Source: Octopus bimaculoides
Taxonomy: Eukaryota
Direction: 5' to 3'
Length of the DNA: 64,000 nucleotides
NCBI RefSeq assembly: GCF_001194135.2
Contig: NC_068988.1
Location: forward strand, 44,735,970 to 44,799,969
The position numbers and the translations under genes are program-made. Every line of letters begins with the position of its first letter. Positions within the stretch are counted from its first letter, which is position 1. The notes under the pieces are model-generated. The model ran no database searches, was not told the origin of the DNA, and saw only the letters and a program-made list of their open reading frames with translations. Shown here one piece after another: positions 31,150 to 37,910 of the stretch.

Positions 31150-32360
31150 ATGTATTAAGTAAAACTTTCCCAATGTGGATGTTGTATATTTTGATAACAT
31201 TTCATAACATAAATGACAAATTTCGAATATCGACGATGTAGTTTCCAAACGTAAATAATATTCAACAGTGATGTAAACACACTGTGCTAATGATATCAGT
31301 TTATAAAGTAAACGATAGCGTTAATAAGGGTAACGAAAATCTTACATATTGTAAAAGATGTCAATTCACAACGTTATTAATATAAATTAACGACGTCATT
31401 AATTTAACTTTATTATCTCTAAATATTGACCCCTTAAAGGTCTATGGTAACTTTCACAAAGTGAATGGTAATGTCAATAAGACAATTAAATAAAAATGAT
31501 AATAATGTTATTAAAATACATCAATGATATTAGTGATATAATTTCATAAAATCTGTTTCAAAACGTCAATAATGTAATTTAACAAAGTTAAAGATCACTT
31601 TCAAATGATAATGATATATTCTGACATCAATGATCATGACATTTGTATTGACACGAATATACTTTCACAAAATTAGTTCCGCAATTCCACAATATCGATG
31701 ATGTTATTCACAAGGTCAGTGAGTTAATTTTACAATCTTATTGGTATAATGAGGAGTGGTGTAATATCCTTGACGTCAATGAGGAGTAGCGTAATATCAT
31801 TGACGTAAATCCACAACGCCAATATCGTAACTTTACAACGGTGTATATAACTTCACAACGTTACTAATGTAAATTTTCAACGTCAGCTTTCTAATTTCAG
31901 TAAGTAAAAGATGTATTTTAACTAAGTCAGCATTGTAGTTTCACAGTGTAAGTTACACCATATCAAAATATGAATAATGTAATATCAGAGCGTCGATATT
32001 ACGGAGATGTTAGTTCAAAACGTTAATGTTCGAAGTATCATTAAAAGTCGATACTGAAATTTCACAACGTCAATGCTGCTATTTTCAAGCGTTACCAACG
32101 TAATTTCACAAAGTCAATCACATTAGTTTTGAAACATGTATGAAGCTGTAAGTTTACGAGTCTTTGATGCAATTTTCTAACCTCACTAATGTTATTTTAC
32201 AACGGCAATGACATAATTTACTAAATTCAAAGACATAATTTTGCAGTGCTAATATTGCAACTTGTAGATGGTCACTAAAAAAAAAATTTACGGTATATAT
32301 TATGTCAATTCACGATTTTCGTGATGTTACTTGAAAATGTCGATGTTGCAATTTTTCAAC
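31150..32360. repeat. Highly diverged 22-bp tandem array, block 1
   Basis: Consecutive 22-mers at 31854, 31876, 31898, 31920; consensus about CACAACGTCAATGATGTAATTT. Confidence 0.85.
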
Positions 32361-32361
32361 G

Positions 32362-32530
32362 ATTGCGTAGTTGAGGAGTTTGCTTTGCAACCATGCGCAT
32401 TCCAGTTAAGTCTCACTCCATGATACCTTAGGCAAGAATTTCGACTATAGTCCCAAGCCGACCAATGCTTTGAGAGTGAATTCGGTAGACGGTAGCTGTA
32501 TGGCAGCCCGTCGTGTATATATATATATAT
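32362..32530 (+). mobile_element. SINE family A, 5' half (degenerate)
   Basis: tttgctttgcaaccatg...ccttaggcaag...ccgaccaatgctttgagagtgaattcggtagacgg...gcccgtcgtgtatata. Confidence 0.65.
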
Positions 32531-33618
32531 ATAACGGTGTTTTATAACCGGTGCTATTGAGAAGAAATGAAGAGTGGCAAATTGTAGGTTACCAACTTAT
32601 AACGGGTTTGACTTGGAAGGGATAATAAATATAAATATTACTTGAATAGGAATCTATGGTGATAAACCCGTCACTTATAACTTAATTATAAGCATTTATC
32701 ACCATACATAAATCTTAACTCAAGGTGCGTAAACGCCGTGGTGAATTATACACACCACAGGACGCTGAACGTGCATGTATGTTGAAGATAATAAAGCTAG
32801 CTCTTTTTCACCGCTATAATAACTGTTTCATAGTCGCAGAAATAAATTTCATCAACAGGTTGAAGAAAATGAAGAAAAAGAAATTATTTACTAAATTAGT
32901 TGATCTACGTACATTTAATATTTACTGTACATTTTTATAAGTCAAAGGAAGACTGTCGTAGAGTTACGACATAAAATTTATATTAACTAATTCTTCCATA
33001 ACTAAGCTACTAGAGTTTTAATCAACAATTCAAAACAGCCTTGCTGAATTAGATAATAGACATGGCATAACAATAGCCAATATCTCAAGGGAGTGAGTAT
33101 CGTGGAATTGGGGTACAACCAACGAACACTGATTAATTTCCCCAAATTAAGTGTTTTTATAACTGCTCATACCTGAATTCTAAGAACCGTATTTCGTGAA
33201 AGATTTCTCTCTGACGAAAGTTAGAATTCAAATATGGGCAGTGATTTTAATCAATGAGAAACTAACAATTATACCTATTCGGGCAACATGACCATTACGT
33301 CATATTACTACCGATAAAGGTCGCTACATAAGCCCTCATCCAGAAAAACTGTTAAAATTTTGCGAAAAAAGAAAAGAATATTAATTATACAAATATATTT
33401 CAGTACATAGTTGGAATTAATATTTTTAGCAAGTCAAATATACAAATTTACAAATATATCCACATGTTGAACAAATGAAAATTACCGCGCATCACGGTTT
33501 TACAATAATACAGCGTTCATGGAAAGTTTATCAAATCGTTCAATATAATTTCTCTGGATAAAAATTATAAAACCTTTAAAAAAACATCCAGGAATATAAA
33601 AGTCCACGAGGATTATAT

Positions 33619-34205: not shown

Positions 34206-34409
34206 CCTATAAAATATAACTGAATATAAATTTTTAACATTAACAAGAAATAACTTCATGTCAATGACGCTGATCTATAATCTTTCAAACTCACGTACAT
34301 ACACACACACACACACACACACACACACACACACACACACACACACACACACACACACACACACACACACACACACACACACACACACACACACACACAC
34401 ACACACATA

Positions 34410-37400
34410 TAATTTCAAAATGGAATTTTACAGTGTTGTTGAAGTAGCTTTACATTCAAACGATTCACGTAACTTCCCCAAGTTAAAAATCGAATTTCAC
34501 AAGTTAGCGATGAAATTTTCCGTAGAACTTCTTGATGTAATTTCAAAAACAACAAGTATATAATGTCATAACACAAGTGATGTAATTTTCTAACCTCGGC
34601 AAGGTATTTAATAAGATGTCATGCATATAATTTCACAACTGCGATCATGTAATTTTATAATGACAATAACGTAAATTCCCAATTCCAAAGATGTAATTTT
34701 AAGGTTTGGAAATGTAATTTTTACGTAGTTAATATATTTATTTTCAATGTCACTAAAGTGAATTCAGAACAATGATAATACAATTTTGAAACGTCGACAT
34801 TGCAAGTATTTCAACGCTGATACAGCTAATCAATGACGCAATTTTGAAACGACAATGGCAAAACGCAATTCCTCAATGAGAATAATGTAATTTCTCAGCG
34901 TTATTCAGATCATTTTCAAATAAGCATTTTACAATTTCAAAATATAATTTAACGATGACGTTGATGTCATTTTCAACGTCAATGATATGAAGTCATAATA
35001 ACAACGATCGTATCTCACAACGTCGTGACGCAATTTAACGTAATTTAAAATGGTCAAATACGTAATTTATCAACGTCAATGAATTAATTTTCAATGATTC
35101 ACTTTTCAGTGTCATTGATGTAATTTAATAACAACAATAATGTCATTTTAGAATGTGAAATATCAATAACGTCGTGAAAATTATTATGAGATTTTCAAAA
35201 TTGCTTTATTAACGTTATAAAATTAAAGTTGCGAATTTATGATATCGAATATATATAATTACAACATTGTAAAATTATGTCGTAAAATATTTCATTATTC
35301 TCTTTTGAAGTATTTTTTGATTTACATTATAAAATTTTACCTCTGAGGTCCTATATTTCAGTGATGTAGTTCACTATGTATATTTACGTGCTTTTACACC
35401 CGTAATGGTGCAATTTTCCAAAGTGAATGATTTCAATATTGTAGTATTGATGTTGTTCCTGAACAGCAATAACATAACTCTCCACTGTAAATGATATAAA
35501 CTTACCCGGTTAAAATAACTTAACAATATGTTCCTTTTATTTTCCAACGGTAATAGCCCCCCCCCCCCAAAAAAAAGAAAACCAGTTATATAATGGTTTC
35601 ACTTTTAAGAATTTAATTTCACAAAGTCGGTGGCGGTAAATTTATACAATCAGTTGTAAATGCAGTAATTAACCTAACTTAGTGTTGTAAATTTTCGATA
35701 CCTCCGTTGTATCTTCACGGAGGCAGTGATGTAATAATGCAATGCAGATTAATTTAAATTCAAAACGTTAGCATTGGAATTTCACTACATCAATTACGCA
35801 CTTTATAATCGTTAAGCATGTAAATTTAAAATCAGATGAAATGTAAATTCATAACATGAATGATGTCAATTAACAATATAAATTACGCAGTGTTACAGTA
35901 TCCATGATATGATTTTACAACAGCTATGATATGTAATTTAAAATGTCAATAATGCAATATCAAAACGTCAAAGACGTAATTTTAGGACGTCGTTGATGGA
36001 AATTTTAAAAAGTGAGTGGTTTCAGTTAATTCGGTCATTGATGTAAATTTACAAGACCCATAACAATGAAGTAACGTAATTTTACAACTTCAGTGATGTA
36101 AATTAAAAGCGTTAAATTTAAATTTCAAAATGTCAGAGATGTACTTTTTACAAAACTAGTGATGTGGATTAGTAACACAATCTGATTTCGTAACGTCAGT
36201 ATTTATGTTTCCAGTGATGTTATCTGGAAACGCACGTGACCTAATTTTGCAAATCTTTTGATTGCTCACACAACGTAATTCGTATAACAACATCTTTGAT
36301 GATGACTTATATAACGTCATTAATTTAGATAATAAAATCAATTATGTAATTTCTCTGCATTAATGGTCTTACTTCACAACGCCTGTGACGTTATATATCA
36401 ATGTCATTGAGATAATTTCTCAAGATTAATGAATATGTAGTTACTGATAGGTGATTTTAATGTTCTCTACCGGTAACAATACGTTTCCCCGAACTCCTAT
36501 TTGAAAAGAAGACTTTTTGTCGAAATATTATCGGATAATTTAAGAACCTATATAACACCTTAAAGTAATACAATATCTTTTCTCCCTGATTTCATTTATT
36601 GACACCACTTTGCATGTTTTGCCTAATTTTTCCCTTGTATTGCTTAAAGTTTTTTTACAAACAACTTTGTCTATTAAAGCATTTCAAAACGTCAATCTCT
36701 TATTTACATACAACGTCAACGATACATTTTCACAACGACCATATTGCGACAAAAATCTAACCTCAGTGATATCAATATCGATGACGTAATTTCAGAATAG
36801 CTATGATGTAATATACCAAAGACAATGATGTAATGCTTGAACAACAATGATGCAGTTTTACAACAACGATGACGTAATTTCGCAACGTCAGTGACGTAAT
36901 TCTGTAGCATTATTGATAAAATTTCAGAACGTCGATGATGTAATGATGTAATGATGTAATATACAATATTTTCAAAGATATGATACACAGCATCAGTCTT
37001 GTCAATGATGTAATTTAAAAAGATATATTGAGAAGTTTCACATCAGCAAAGATATAATTTCCTAACGTAAATAATATAAATTCTAAACGTTAGAAACGTC
37101 AATTTTACATTATGAATTATTTCAAGTATGTAATATTACAACTTCAACAATGCAACTTAACATCATCAATTATTACTTTTCTAACGTTATTGTTATAATT
37201 TTACACCATTTATGATAACTTCTACAGCACCACTTATAAAATTCAATAACCTGCTTTATGTAATTTATTATTATGGACACAGTATTTTCGCAAATCACTT
37301 ATGTAGTTTGAAAAGATCAAAGATAAATAATTGTCAATTCACAATGTCAATATCCTCTTCGAAAAAAATCGATATTGTATATTCACAACGTCATTGTGAA

Positions 37401-37910
37401 TGCATATAATCTAATTTAACAACGTTAATTTCAAAACGTCATTGAGTTAAAACTTCTCAACGTCACTTCCCTAATTTCATAATTTTAGTGTGATAATTAT
37501 ACTAATTTTTAATGTAATATCACACAATCATTGTTATAATCATATAGTTTTAAGATTACCATATTGCAATGTCAGCATTGTAATTTCTTTTATAATGTAA
37601 TTGATGTTATTTTATCACGTCAGTGTTCCAACATCAAAGATAGAATTTCCCTACATCTATGATATCGTTTATCAATGTCTATAATGTAATCTTACAACGC
37701 CAATGTTACAATTTTCAACGAAAATGATATACCTTATGTACAGATGTAATTTCATAACTTCAGGTATCTAAATCAAAACTTCTATGGCGAAAATTTACAG
37801 TCAATGATGTAATTTTACAGTGTTTATGATAAAATTTTACACCTGTCATAATGTTATAATTTTAATCTAGGATTTAATGTTACAACGTCAGTGAAGCTAC
37901 ATACACAATA
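34410..37910. repeat. Highly diverged 22-bp tandem array, blocks 2-3 (unique insert at ~36430-36680)
   Basis: For example 22-mers at 36859, 36881, 36903, 36925; TAATTT recurs at ~22-bp spacing throughout. Confidence 0.85.

Follow-up and report, generated by a model that had tools for sequence, protein, structure and literature searches.

The 22-bp array and its surroundings

The analysed window is a 64,000-nucleotide stretch of Octopus bimaculoides DNA, in which 22-bp units are arranged head to tail between positions 31192 and 37894. TRF is unsuitable at the divergence of these units and returned only fragments of 2–5.5 copies at a minimum score of 30, so a wraparound profile Viterbi parse was written instead and recovered ~168 units with 3702 matched bases (3.7 kb). 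The best-kept stretch is the longest TRF fragment (36781–36901 in block 4; 5.5 copies, 67% matches). The array consensus is YACAACGTCAATGATGTAATTT; the trained profile gave TACAACGTCAATGATGTAATTT, with a tie between C and T at position 1, in agreement with the consensus proposed in the initial annotation. That annotation had estimated ~200 units and 4.4 kb in three blocks, which is larger than the size measured here, and the parse resolved four main blocks and a small fifth one. The region contains no N gaps, and the outer edges of the array are fuzzy in the profile parse.

The units share one common consensus and lie on the + strand, with a single inverted piece of three units as the sole exception. 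Block 1 (31192–32361, + strand, ~49 units) comprises 1068 matched bases with 32.7% mismatch to the consensus and a lag-22 autocorrelation of 0.417 (z = 12.0). Block 2 (34420–35159, + strand, ~33 units; 715 matched bases, 30.3% mismatch, lag-22 z = 6.0) is followed by the inverted trio (35160–35225), the only segment recovered by the minus-strand parse. BLAST aligned 35160–35225 and 35184–35336 to array units in reverse, and the trio is a small local inversion. The adjoining spacer (35226–35357) yielded no units on either strand and only a weak reverse BLAST match to the array; on the BLAST result it may hold more inverted units up to ~35336, or else be a degenerate or inserted stretch. The small fifth block (35358–35505, + strand, ~7 units, identity to consensus 0.646) and a 150-bp unparsed spacer with a C10A8 homopolymer run (35506–35655) precede block 3 (35656–36432, + strand, ~33 units; 732 matched bases, 32.9% mismatch, lag-22 z = 9.9), and a further unparsed spacer of 276 bp (36433–36708) precedes block 4 (36709–37894, + strand, ~48 units; 1053 matched bases, 29.4% mismatch, lag-22 z = 9.3). 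Neither the 150-bp nor the 276-bp spacer has another match within the window.

The array had been described as a non-coding repeat, correctly: no open reading frame runs through the units, the consensus unit as read carries stops on both strands, and the longest open reading frame overlapping the region, of 101 aa, is mostly (AC)n translation. ARAGORN predicted no tRNA.

Blocks 1 and 2 are separated by a 2.06-kb interruption (32362–34419) that is made of later insertions, not of repeat, and the lag-22 signal is absent from this 2-kb insert (32365–34290) and from control stretches. It contains the two halves of a dispersed repeat of ~380 bp, which may be classed as SINE-like from its size and dispersion. 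The left half (32374–32540, + strand) ends in (TA)9, is 72% identical to window positions 16009–16166 and also matches 1143–1311 and 56760–56879; the right half of the same family (34049–34219, + strand) matches 50110–50251 (minus strand) and 57224–57398. Between the two halves lies a decayed retroelement fragment (33018–34035, minus strand) with a pol-like C-terminal reading frame (33560–34035) that contains two in-frame stops. Its translation matches a hypothetical protein of Octopus vulgaris (P0001; 62% identity, E = 3.4e-36), and 33018–33975 shows 69% identity in a 993-bp alignment with an O. vulgaris locus (L012) that has no 22-bp array. By its motifs the fragment may be an LTR-retrotransposon pol tail; Pfam gave nothing above cut-off for the fragment, for P0001 or for the open reading frame at 39035–39478. 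An (AC)55 microsatellite (34297–34407, + strand; TRF, 55.5 copies, 98% matches) adjoins the insertion. The sequence on both flanks of the SINE-like insertion is unit-like.

Divergence, periodicity and mutational pattern

Units differ pairwise at 47% of their positions, which bears out the earlier remark that neighbours differ at about half of theirs. The divergence is star-like. Aligned unit-to-unit identity stays at 0.52–0.53 whether units are 1 or more than 50 apart, which is what independent draws from the profile would give (0.53), and identity to the consensus averages 0.68 with an sd of 0.095, compared with a binomial sd of 0.10. The mean lies at 0.65–0.69 in every block. Conservation per unit is not overdispersed (variance 4.06 vs 4.51 in shuffles) and no unit is over-conserved. 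Tests among the units for subfamilies, for covariation between columns and for spatially clustered variants were all negative, and autocorrelation up to lag 400 revealed no higher-order repeat or internal duplication above background. Minor peaks at lags 273 and 295 were considered as a higher-order repeat and rejected, as they are merely re-phased stretches with an ordinary match of 0.4–0.55. The flat identity with separation, together with the lack of a higher-order period, indicates a relic and not an active satellite; since neighbours resemble each other no better than distant units do, turnover ceased long ago.

The 22-bp periodicity claimed in the initial annotation is real. Each of the four main blocks shows a lag-22 autocorrelation peak (0.395–0.433 vs a background of ~0.30; z = 6.0–12.0), and 31150–37910 taken as a whole gives z = 15.8, with dinucleotide shuffles as the reference for the blocks and the whole alike. 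The period had also been called fixed, and this was overstated. Of 141 measurable units, 96 (68%) are exactly 22 bp long, another 36 deviate by 1 bp (21 or 23 bp) and 9 measure 20, 24 or 25 bp, and the four main blocks also hold 18 phase-breaking gaps. The excess match, 0.132 at lag 22, drops to 0.051, 0.028, 0.007 and 0.002 at lags 44, 66, 88 and 110, respectively, so that phase coherence is gone within ~4 units (~88 bp; by lag 88–110). Whole-block Fourier power is spread over periods 21–23 (z = 1.7 at 22.0 and 3.6 at 22.5) without a sharp peak at 22.0, a smearing that reflects phase drift.

Indels were held in the initial annotation to be much less tolerated than substitutions, and an indel rate like that of neighbouring transposable elements, combined with a match to a known abundant satellite or an element-internal repeat, was named there as evidence to the contrary; the first of these, such a rate, was found. 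The indel:substitution ratio of the array is ~0.06, being 0.045–0.10 by a fit to the autocorrelation and 0.06–0.08 when the same parse was applied to simulated arrays; ratios of 0 and 0.01 are strongly rejected. As a local control, 104 gap openings per 1597 mismatches (0.065) were counted across 49 dispersed-repeat pairs from the window, and alignment of the retroelement fragment with its O. vulgaris counterpart gave 0.12. The agreement between the array and the local dispersed repeats indicates that indels in the array are not depleted.

The substitution spectrum is biased from GC to AT (C>T 0.265 and G>A 0.294 vs A>G 0.099 and T>C 0.139), implying by arithmetic an equilibrium GC of ~0.29 where the local GC is 0.28–0.32, and it looks mutational and neutral. 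Decay of methylated CpG was considered as a force shaping the unit and dropped, as G>A and C>T are similar at CpG and non-CpG positions (0.27–0.30) and CpG sites show no special excess. A neutral simulation with base-specific rates only reproduced retention at 18 of the 22 positions. At the others, A4, T21 and T22 are retained ~0.10 above the simulation (z = 2.1–3.1) and position 11 mixes A and G (z = -4.6); these outliers could be due to ancestral variants, context-dependent mutation or alignment anchoring, and weak constraint is possible.

The JC distance of the array is ~0.40–0.47; with the published octopus rate, we infer from it an age of roughly 110–130 My. The interrupting SINE-like copy shares 64–72% identity with its relatives, corresponding to ~0.17–0.2 substitutions/site since insertion. 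The insertion is thus probably younger than the array (~0.17–0.2 vs 0.40–0.47 substitutions/site), and the relative ages fit.

Alternative readings of the array

Helitron-like and MITE-borne tandem repeats are common in molluscs, as known from bivalve work, and the array could in principle be a tandem repeat internal to, or seeded by, a transposable element, one of many dispersed copies and not a locus-specific satellite. The transposable element-rich window and the fuzzy array edges are compatible with this reading, and the array resembles the mollusc cases in belonging to the same phylum and in lying as a tandem array amid transposable elements. The mollusc monomers, however, measure ~150–170 bp compared with 22 bp here, and the array shows neither element termini nor repeated flanks in the window. 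No terminal inverted repeats, direct repeats or long inverted arms bracket it, only short weak inverted pairs being found, and its flanks (30500–31190 and 37895–38600) match nothing else in the window except a microsatellite. The same profile parse detected no array segment on either strand in the remaining 56 kb of the window, and in 20 kb of O. vulgaris DNA it produced only three isolated single-unit hits and no array. In collections without cephalopod genomes, a two-unit pattern had no match among metagenome contigs, a looser pattern had 10 single matches, and an 18-mer had one match among viral contigs; no array lies at any of these loci, and the single matches are at chance level and uninformative on genomic abundance. 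On the evidence of this one window, an origin within a transposable element is unlikely, though dispersed copies may lie elsewhere. A full-text search of the literature found no described octopus or cephalopod 22-bp satellite.

Functional readings are less probable still. The initial annotation had raised selection on spacing or shape, with an A-tract every two helical turns producing curved DNA or positioning nucleosomes and indels selected against. The strong short-range 22-bp period, the slight excess of T21 and T22 over the neutral model and Fourier power at period 11 (z = 3.9, which a 22-bp unit would give anyway as a harmonic) are what such selection could offer. The indel ratio, however, equals that of the local neutral control, 32% of units depart from 22 bp and phase is soon lost; there is no power at 10.5 bp over whole blocks (z = -0.3), and only 35 of 116 gap-free units (30%) keep AATTT intact, compared with 34.6 expected from independent columns, with tract positions 18–20 at neutral expectation. 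Selection on spacing or curvature is thus unsupported, and we regard it as very unlikely. Equally little credence is due to the idea that the array serves as an enhancer, silencer or boundary through a bank of transcription-factor sites. The consensus contains ACGTCA, presumably a CRE half-site, and TGA(T/C)GTAAT, which we take to resemble C/EBP-ATF or PAR-bZIP sites, and by this presumed resemblance the array is like clustered bZIP (CRE or C/EBP-ATF-like) site arrays. The two motifs are intact slightly, and not significantly, above expectation (10 vs 6.7 and 11 vs 7.8; P = 0.11 and 0.12). In contrast to such site arrays, the cores are conserved no more than neutral expectation and base composition predict, their G and C positions are the most decayed (51–62% retained), no subset of units is well kept, and intact ACGTCA, TGA[TC]GTAA and AATTT are not commoner than in column shuffles (P = 0.09–0.73). 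That the array is a source of small RNAs, either a piRNA cluster or 22-nt phased RNAs, is extremely improbable: the unit length coincides with a small-RNA size, but the repeats are direct, without long inverted arms to give double-stranded RNA, Rfam returned no match in the whole window at gathering score, and the phase drift leaves no fixed 22-nt register. One point that counts against neutral decay is that sites at mutation–selection balance for a degenerate motif would also give a star-like pattern. An array more than 100 My old might sit at the orthologous octopod site and be kept by a weak sequence-dependent role in chromatin: the TTT/AATTT and bZIP-like cores could, for instance, nucleate a heterochromatin or boundary element, and the A4, T21 and T22 excess would be the trace of that role; we consider this highly improbable.

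Origin and meaning of the array

The array is most probably a fossil satellite or minisatellite that arose by one ancient amplification and then decayed neutrally, and it shows no trace of upkeep of either spacing or sequence; whether it is a satellite or a local minisatellite hinges on genome copy number, the array being known here from one window. The suggestion that it is simply a very old satellite, which the initial annotation had offered beside selection, is supported by the star-like divergence, the ordinary indel rate and the neutral-looking spectrum. On this fossil-array reading, a 22-bp unit, YACAACGTCAATGATGTAATTT, would have been amplified once by unequal exchange, slippage or rolling-circle-type copying into a presumably homogeneous head-to-tail array of at least ~170 copies. 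Turnover would then have stopped, and each unit would have decayed independently through GC-to-AT biased substitutions with ~0.06 indels per substitution. During this decay a SINE-like element probably inserted into the array and later received the retroelement fragment, and the small inversion probably arose. The present array would thus have no detectable sequence-specific or spacing-specific function.

Among known systems, the old monomeric alpha satellite that flanks primate centromeres is similarly head to tail in one orientation, with homogenisation ended, units approximately equidistant, and later SINE or retroelement insertions and small rearrangements. Its unit is 171 bp compared with 22 bp here, and the divergence of the octopus array from its consensus (~31% observed) exceeds that of most monomeric satellite layers. 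Minisatellites or VNTRs share with the array the unit length range (10–60 bp) and confinement to one local array a few kilobases long; in typical minisatellites, however, ongoing unequal exchange or gene conversion keeps units similar, whereas here adjacent units are as different as distant ones.

The array is an ordinary relic that adds another decayed tandem array to a repeat-rich octopus genome, and in itself matters little as biology. As TRF-based annotation finds only fragments of it, arrays this old are counted as unique DNA, and cephalopod repeat content is underestimated to the extent that they pass as such. Its ~168 copies, descended in parallel from a single ancestral 22-mer that can be reconstructed, also make the array a built-in experiment in neutral evolution, which yields the local octopus mutation spectrum, with its strong GC-to-AT bias, and an indel:substitution ratio of ~0.06.

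Extent and parsing of the 22-bp array

Autocorrelation revealed strong 22-bp periodicity at 31192-37894 of the window. Identity at a 22-bp offset (lag 22) was 0.395-0.433 in four blocks (31192-32361, 34420-35159, 35656-36432 and 36709-37894), as compared with ~0.30 at other lags, giving z values of 6.0-12.0 per block and 15.8 for the whole interval against dinucleotide-preserving shuffles. The signal was missing in the 2-kb insert between the first two blocks and in control stretches. Units were parsed by a purpose-written wraparound (circular) profile Viterbi with a background state, trained iteratively, which assigned 3702 bases to ~168 units in 25 segments, including a small block at 35358-35505. 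The trained consensus was TACAACGTCAATGATGTAATTT, with a C/T tie at position 1, and agreed with the consensus proposed in the initial annotation; written as a profile query, the unit is YACAACGTCAATGATGTAATTT. Consensus matches were essentially limited to the + strand and to the array interval, and the same parse of the other 56 kb of the window returned zero segments on either strand. Since the parse is specific to this interval, where no assembly gaps occur, the array is real and, within the window, confined to this one location. The minus-strand parse of the interval yielded a single 66-bp inverted piece at 35160-35225 (possibly extending to ~35336), in which three reversed units abut the end of block 2; it looks like a small local inversion within the array.

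The window itself is eukaryotic draft sequence, rich in microsatellites and broken by N gaps, with a GC content of ~35% and no convincing long ORFs. Twelve N runs (6014-6301, 9731-9846, 11771-12170, 15586-15800, 44618-45514, 46356-46549, 48694-49474, 50332-50434 plus four short ones; 3041 bases altogether), most of which adjoin microsatellites and none of which falls in the array, mark it as a short-read draft scaffold. Two 100% identical 73-bp stretches on either side of a 10-N gap (43172-43244 and 43255-43327) are almost certainly a scaffolding or gap-closing artefact rather than biology.

Period, indels and divergence of the units

Contrary to the initial claim, the period was not fixed: unit lengths varied, phase drifted and Fourier power was smeared. 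Unit length was 22 bp in 96 of the 141 measurable units, 21 or 23 bp in 36 and 20, 24 or 25 bp in 9, and the parse of the four main blocks contained 24 insertions, 36 deletions and 18 phase-breaking gaps (~0.48 events per unit). Match excess over background was 0.132 at lag 22, 0.051 at lag 44, 0.028 at lag 66, 0.007 at lag 88 and 0.002 at lag 110, with leakage of the periodic signal to lags 45, 67 and 89. Whole-block Fourier power was spread over periods 21-23 without a peak at 22.0.

For rate estimation, perfect 22-bp arrays were evolved in silico under the observed base-specific substitution spectrum with a range of indel:substitution ratios (r). Values of r = 0 and r = 0.01 were strongly rejected; the autocorrelation decay was fitted by r of ~0.045-0.10, and the identical parse applied to simulated arrays matched the observed counts at r of ~0.06-0.08. 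Among 49 dispersed-repeat pairs in the window, used as a local yardstick, 104 gap openings accompanied 1597 mismatches (0.065), and the retroelement fragment within the insert differed from its Octopus vulgaris copy by 0.12 indels per substitution (29/236). By these yardsticks array indels are not depleted, the first part of the outcome that the initial annotation had itself named as refuting selection on spacing.

Substitution proportions in the units were 0.265 for C>T and 0.294 for G>A, as against 0.099 for A>G and 0.139 for T>C, with similar C>T/G>A values at CpG and non-CpG positions; the spectrum is mutational in character. By our own arithmetic, these proportions imply an equilibrium GC of ~0.29, near the value observed locally (0.28-0.32). 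A neutral simulation with base-specific rates alone matched retention at 18 of the 22 positions. Position 11, where A and G are mixed, deviated with z -4.6, and A4, T21 and T22 were kept ~0.10 above the neutral prediction (z 2.1-3.1); ancestral variants, context effects or alignment anchoring may be mundane explanations for these four positions.

Identity between aligned units was 0.52-0.53 whether they lay 1, 2 and so on to 10, 20, 50 or >50 units apart, and independent draws from the position profile predict the same value (0.53), so the statement that units differ at about half their positions was correct. Identity to the consensus averaged 0.68 (sd 0.095, versus a binomial sd of 0.10) and was 0.65-0.69 in every block. 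No higher-order repeat, covarying columns, spatial clustering of variants or over-conserved units were detected in the array. The units are thus related by a star phylogeny. A single amplification of the 22-bp unit was probably followed by independent decay of the units, without further homogenisation.

Insertions, age and neighbouring repeats

The 2.06-kb interruption at 32362-34419 is not repeat. It carries the left (32374-32540) and right (34049-34219) halves of an element of a dispersed, ~380-bp SINE-like family, of which full copies lie at 13285-13648 and 16000-16382, among others in the window. Between the halves, on the minus strand, is a decayed retroelement fragment with a pol-like tail 62% identical to a hypothetical protein of O. 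vulgaris (E 3.4e-36). Over about 1 kb, the fragment can be aligned at 69% with a chromosome locus of O. vulgaris in which the 22-bp array is absent. The O. vulgaris matches show the source to be an octopus or a near relative of one, and the insert to be a mobile element in its own right. As the SINE-like halves lie apart, the array would have come first, then the SINE-like element and then the retroelement. The SINE-like copy in the array is 64-72% identical to its relatives, implying an insertion probably ~0.17-0.2 substitutions/site ago; it would thus be younger than the array, in agreement with what the nesting requires. Three shorter spacers within the array interval (35226-35357, 35506-35655 and 36433-36708) were left unassigned by the parse.

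The observed mismatch of 31% corresponds to a Jukes-Cantor (JC) distance of ~0.40, and simulations fitting the array use 0.40-0.47 substitutions/site. Set against the neutral rate of 0.0036/site/My applied to O. bimaculoides (cited in PMC13282606), this distance would make the array ~110-130 My old, given a homogeneous start and an applicable rate. At that age it would predate both transposon waves mentioned in that paper (JC 0.09 and 0.2).

The SINE-like family also occurs at 878-1320, 50092-50331 and 56760-57398, with partial copies at 20122-20209 and 46578-46686. Its copies are 70-87% identical to one another and contain a variable internal microsatellite; one is followed by (CA)54 at 13651-13758, and no tRNA-like head was found by Rfam or ARAGORN. 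A second short dispersed family (3878-4298, 4516-4870, 22566-23142, 24341-24561, 47256-47628 and 62339-62544; ~130-220 bp aligned) has copies 70-88% identical, several of them tandem or adjacent. At 8287-8830, a G-rich 37-bp tandem repeat (14.9 copies, 80% matches, 4% indels) shows a 110-bp, three-unit higher-order period and contains a 10-N gap (8627-8636); the 22-bp array is far older. A 66-bp unit is repeated 2.4 times at 12695-12855 (80% matches). The 147-aa ORF at 39035-39478 (+) is poly-Asn/poly-Asp from an (AAT/GAT)n microsatellite over its N-terminal two-thirds and gave only sub-threshold low-complexity matches in Pfam; its C-terminal ~45 residues (VPIIVGSLGTV...LLQKFCLFGTAR) may resemble the tail of non-LTR retrotransposon ORFs.

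Nature of the array

In its behaviour the array resembles a satellite or minisatellite layer that has been abandoned. It has the structure that defines tandem satellite DNA, with copies sought within one 64-kb window, and lacks the ongoing homogenisation that is a feature of satellites. The closest analogue known to us is the old monomeric satellite DNA that flanks active centromeric arrays and shares with it equidistant units, absence of homogenisation and TE insertions.

An origin inside a transposable element was unsupported within the window, where no termini were found and the flanks are unique. The reading in which spacing or curvature is maintained failed on lag decay, Fourier power, unit lengths, AATTT counts and position retention, leaving constrained spacing unsupported. 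The binding-site-array reading failed on position retention and on the motif counts, as intact ACGTCA, TGA(T/C)GTAA and AATTT showed no excess over column shuffles, and the coding-repeat and RNA readings likewise failed the tests run. The other option of the initial annotation, simply a very old satellite, proved right.

The searchable literature yielded no account of an octopus satellite with a 22-bp unit, which is weak evidence of absence. The array is new in being undescribed, unusually old, short in unit and missed by standard tools, and it doubles as a yardstick of neutral mutation.
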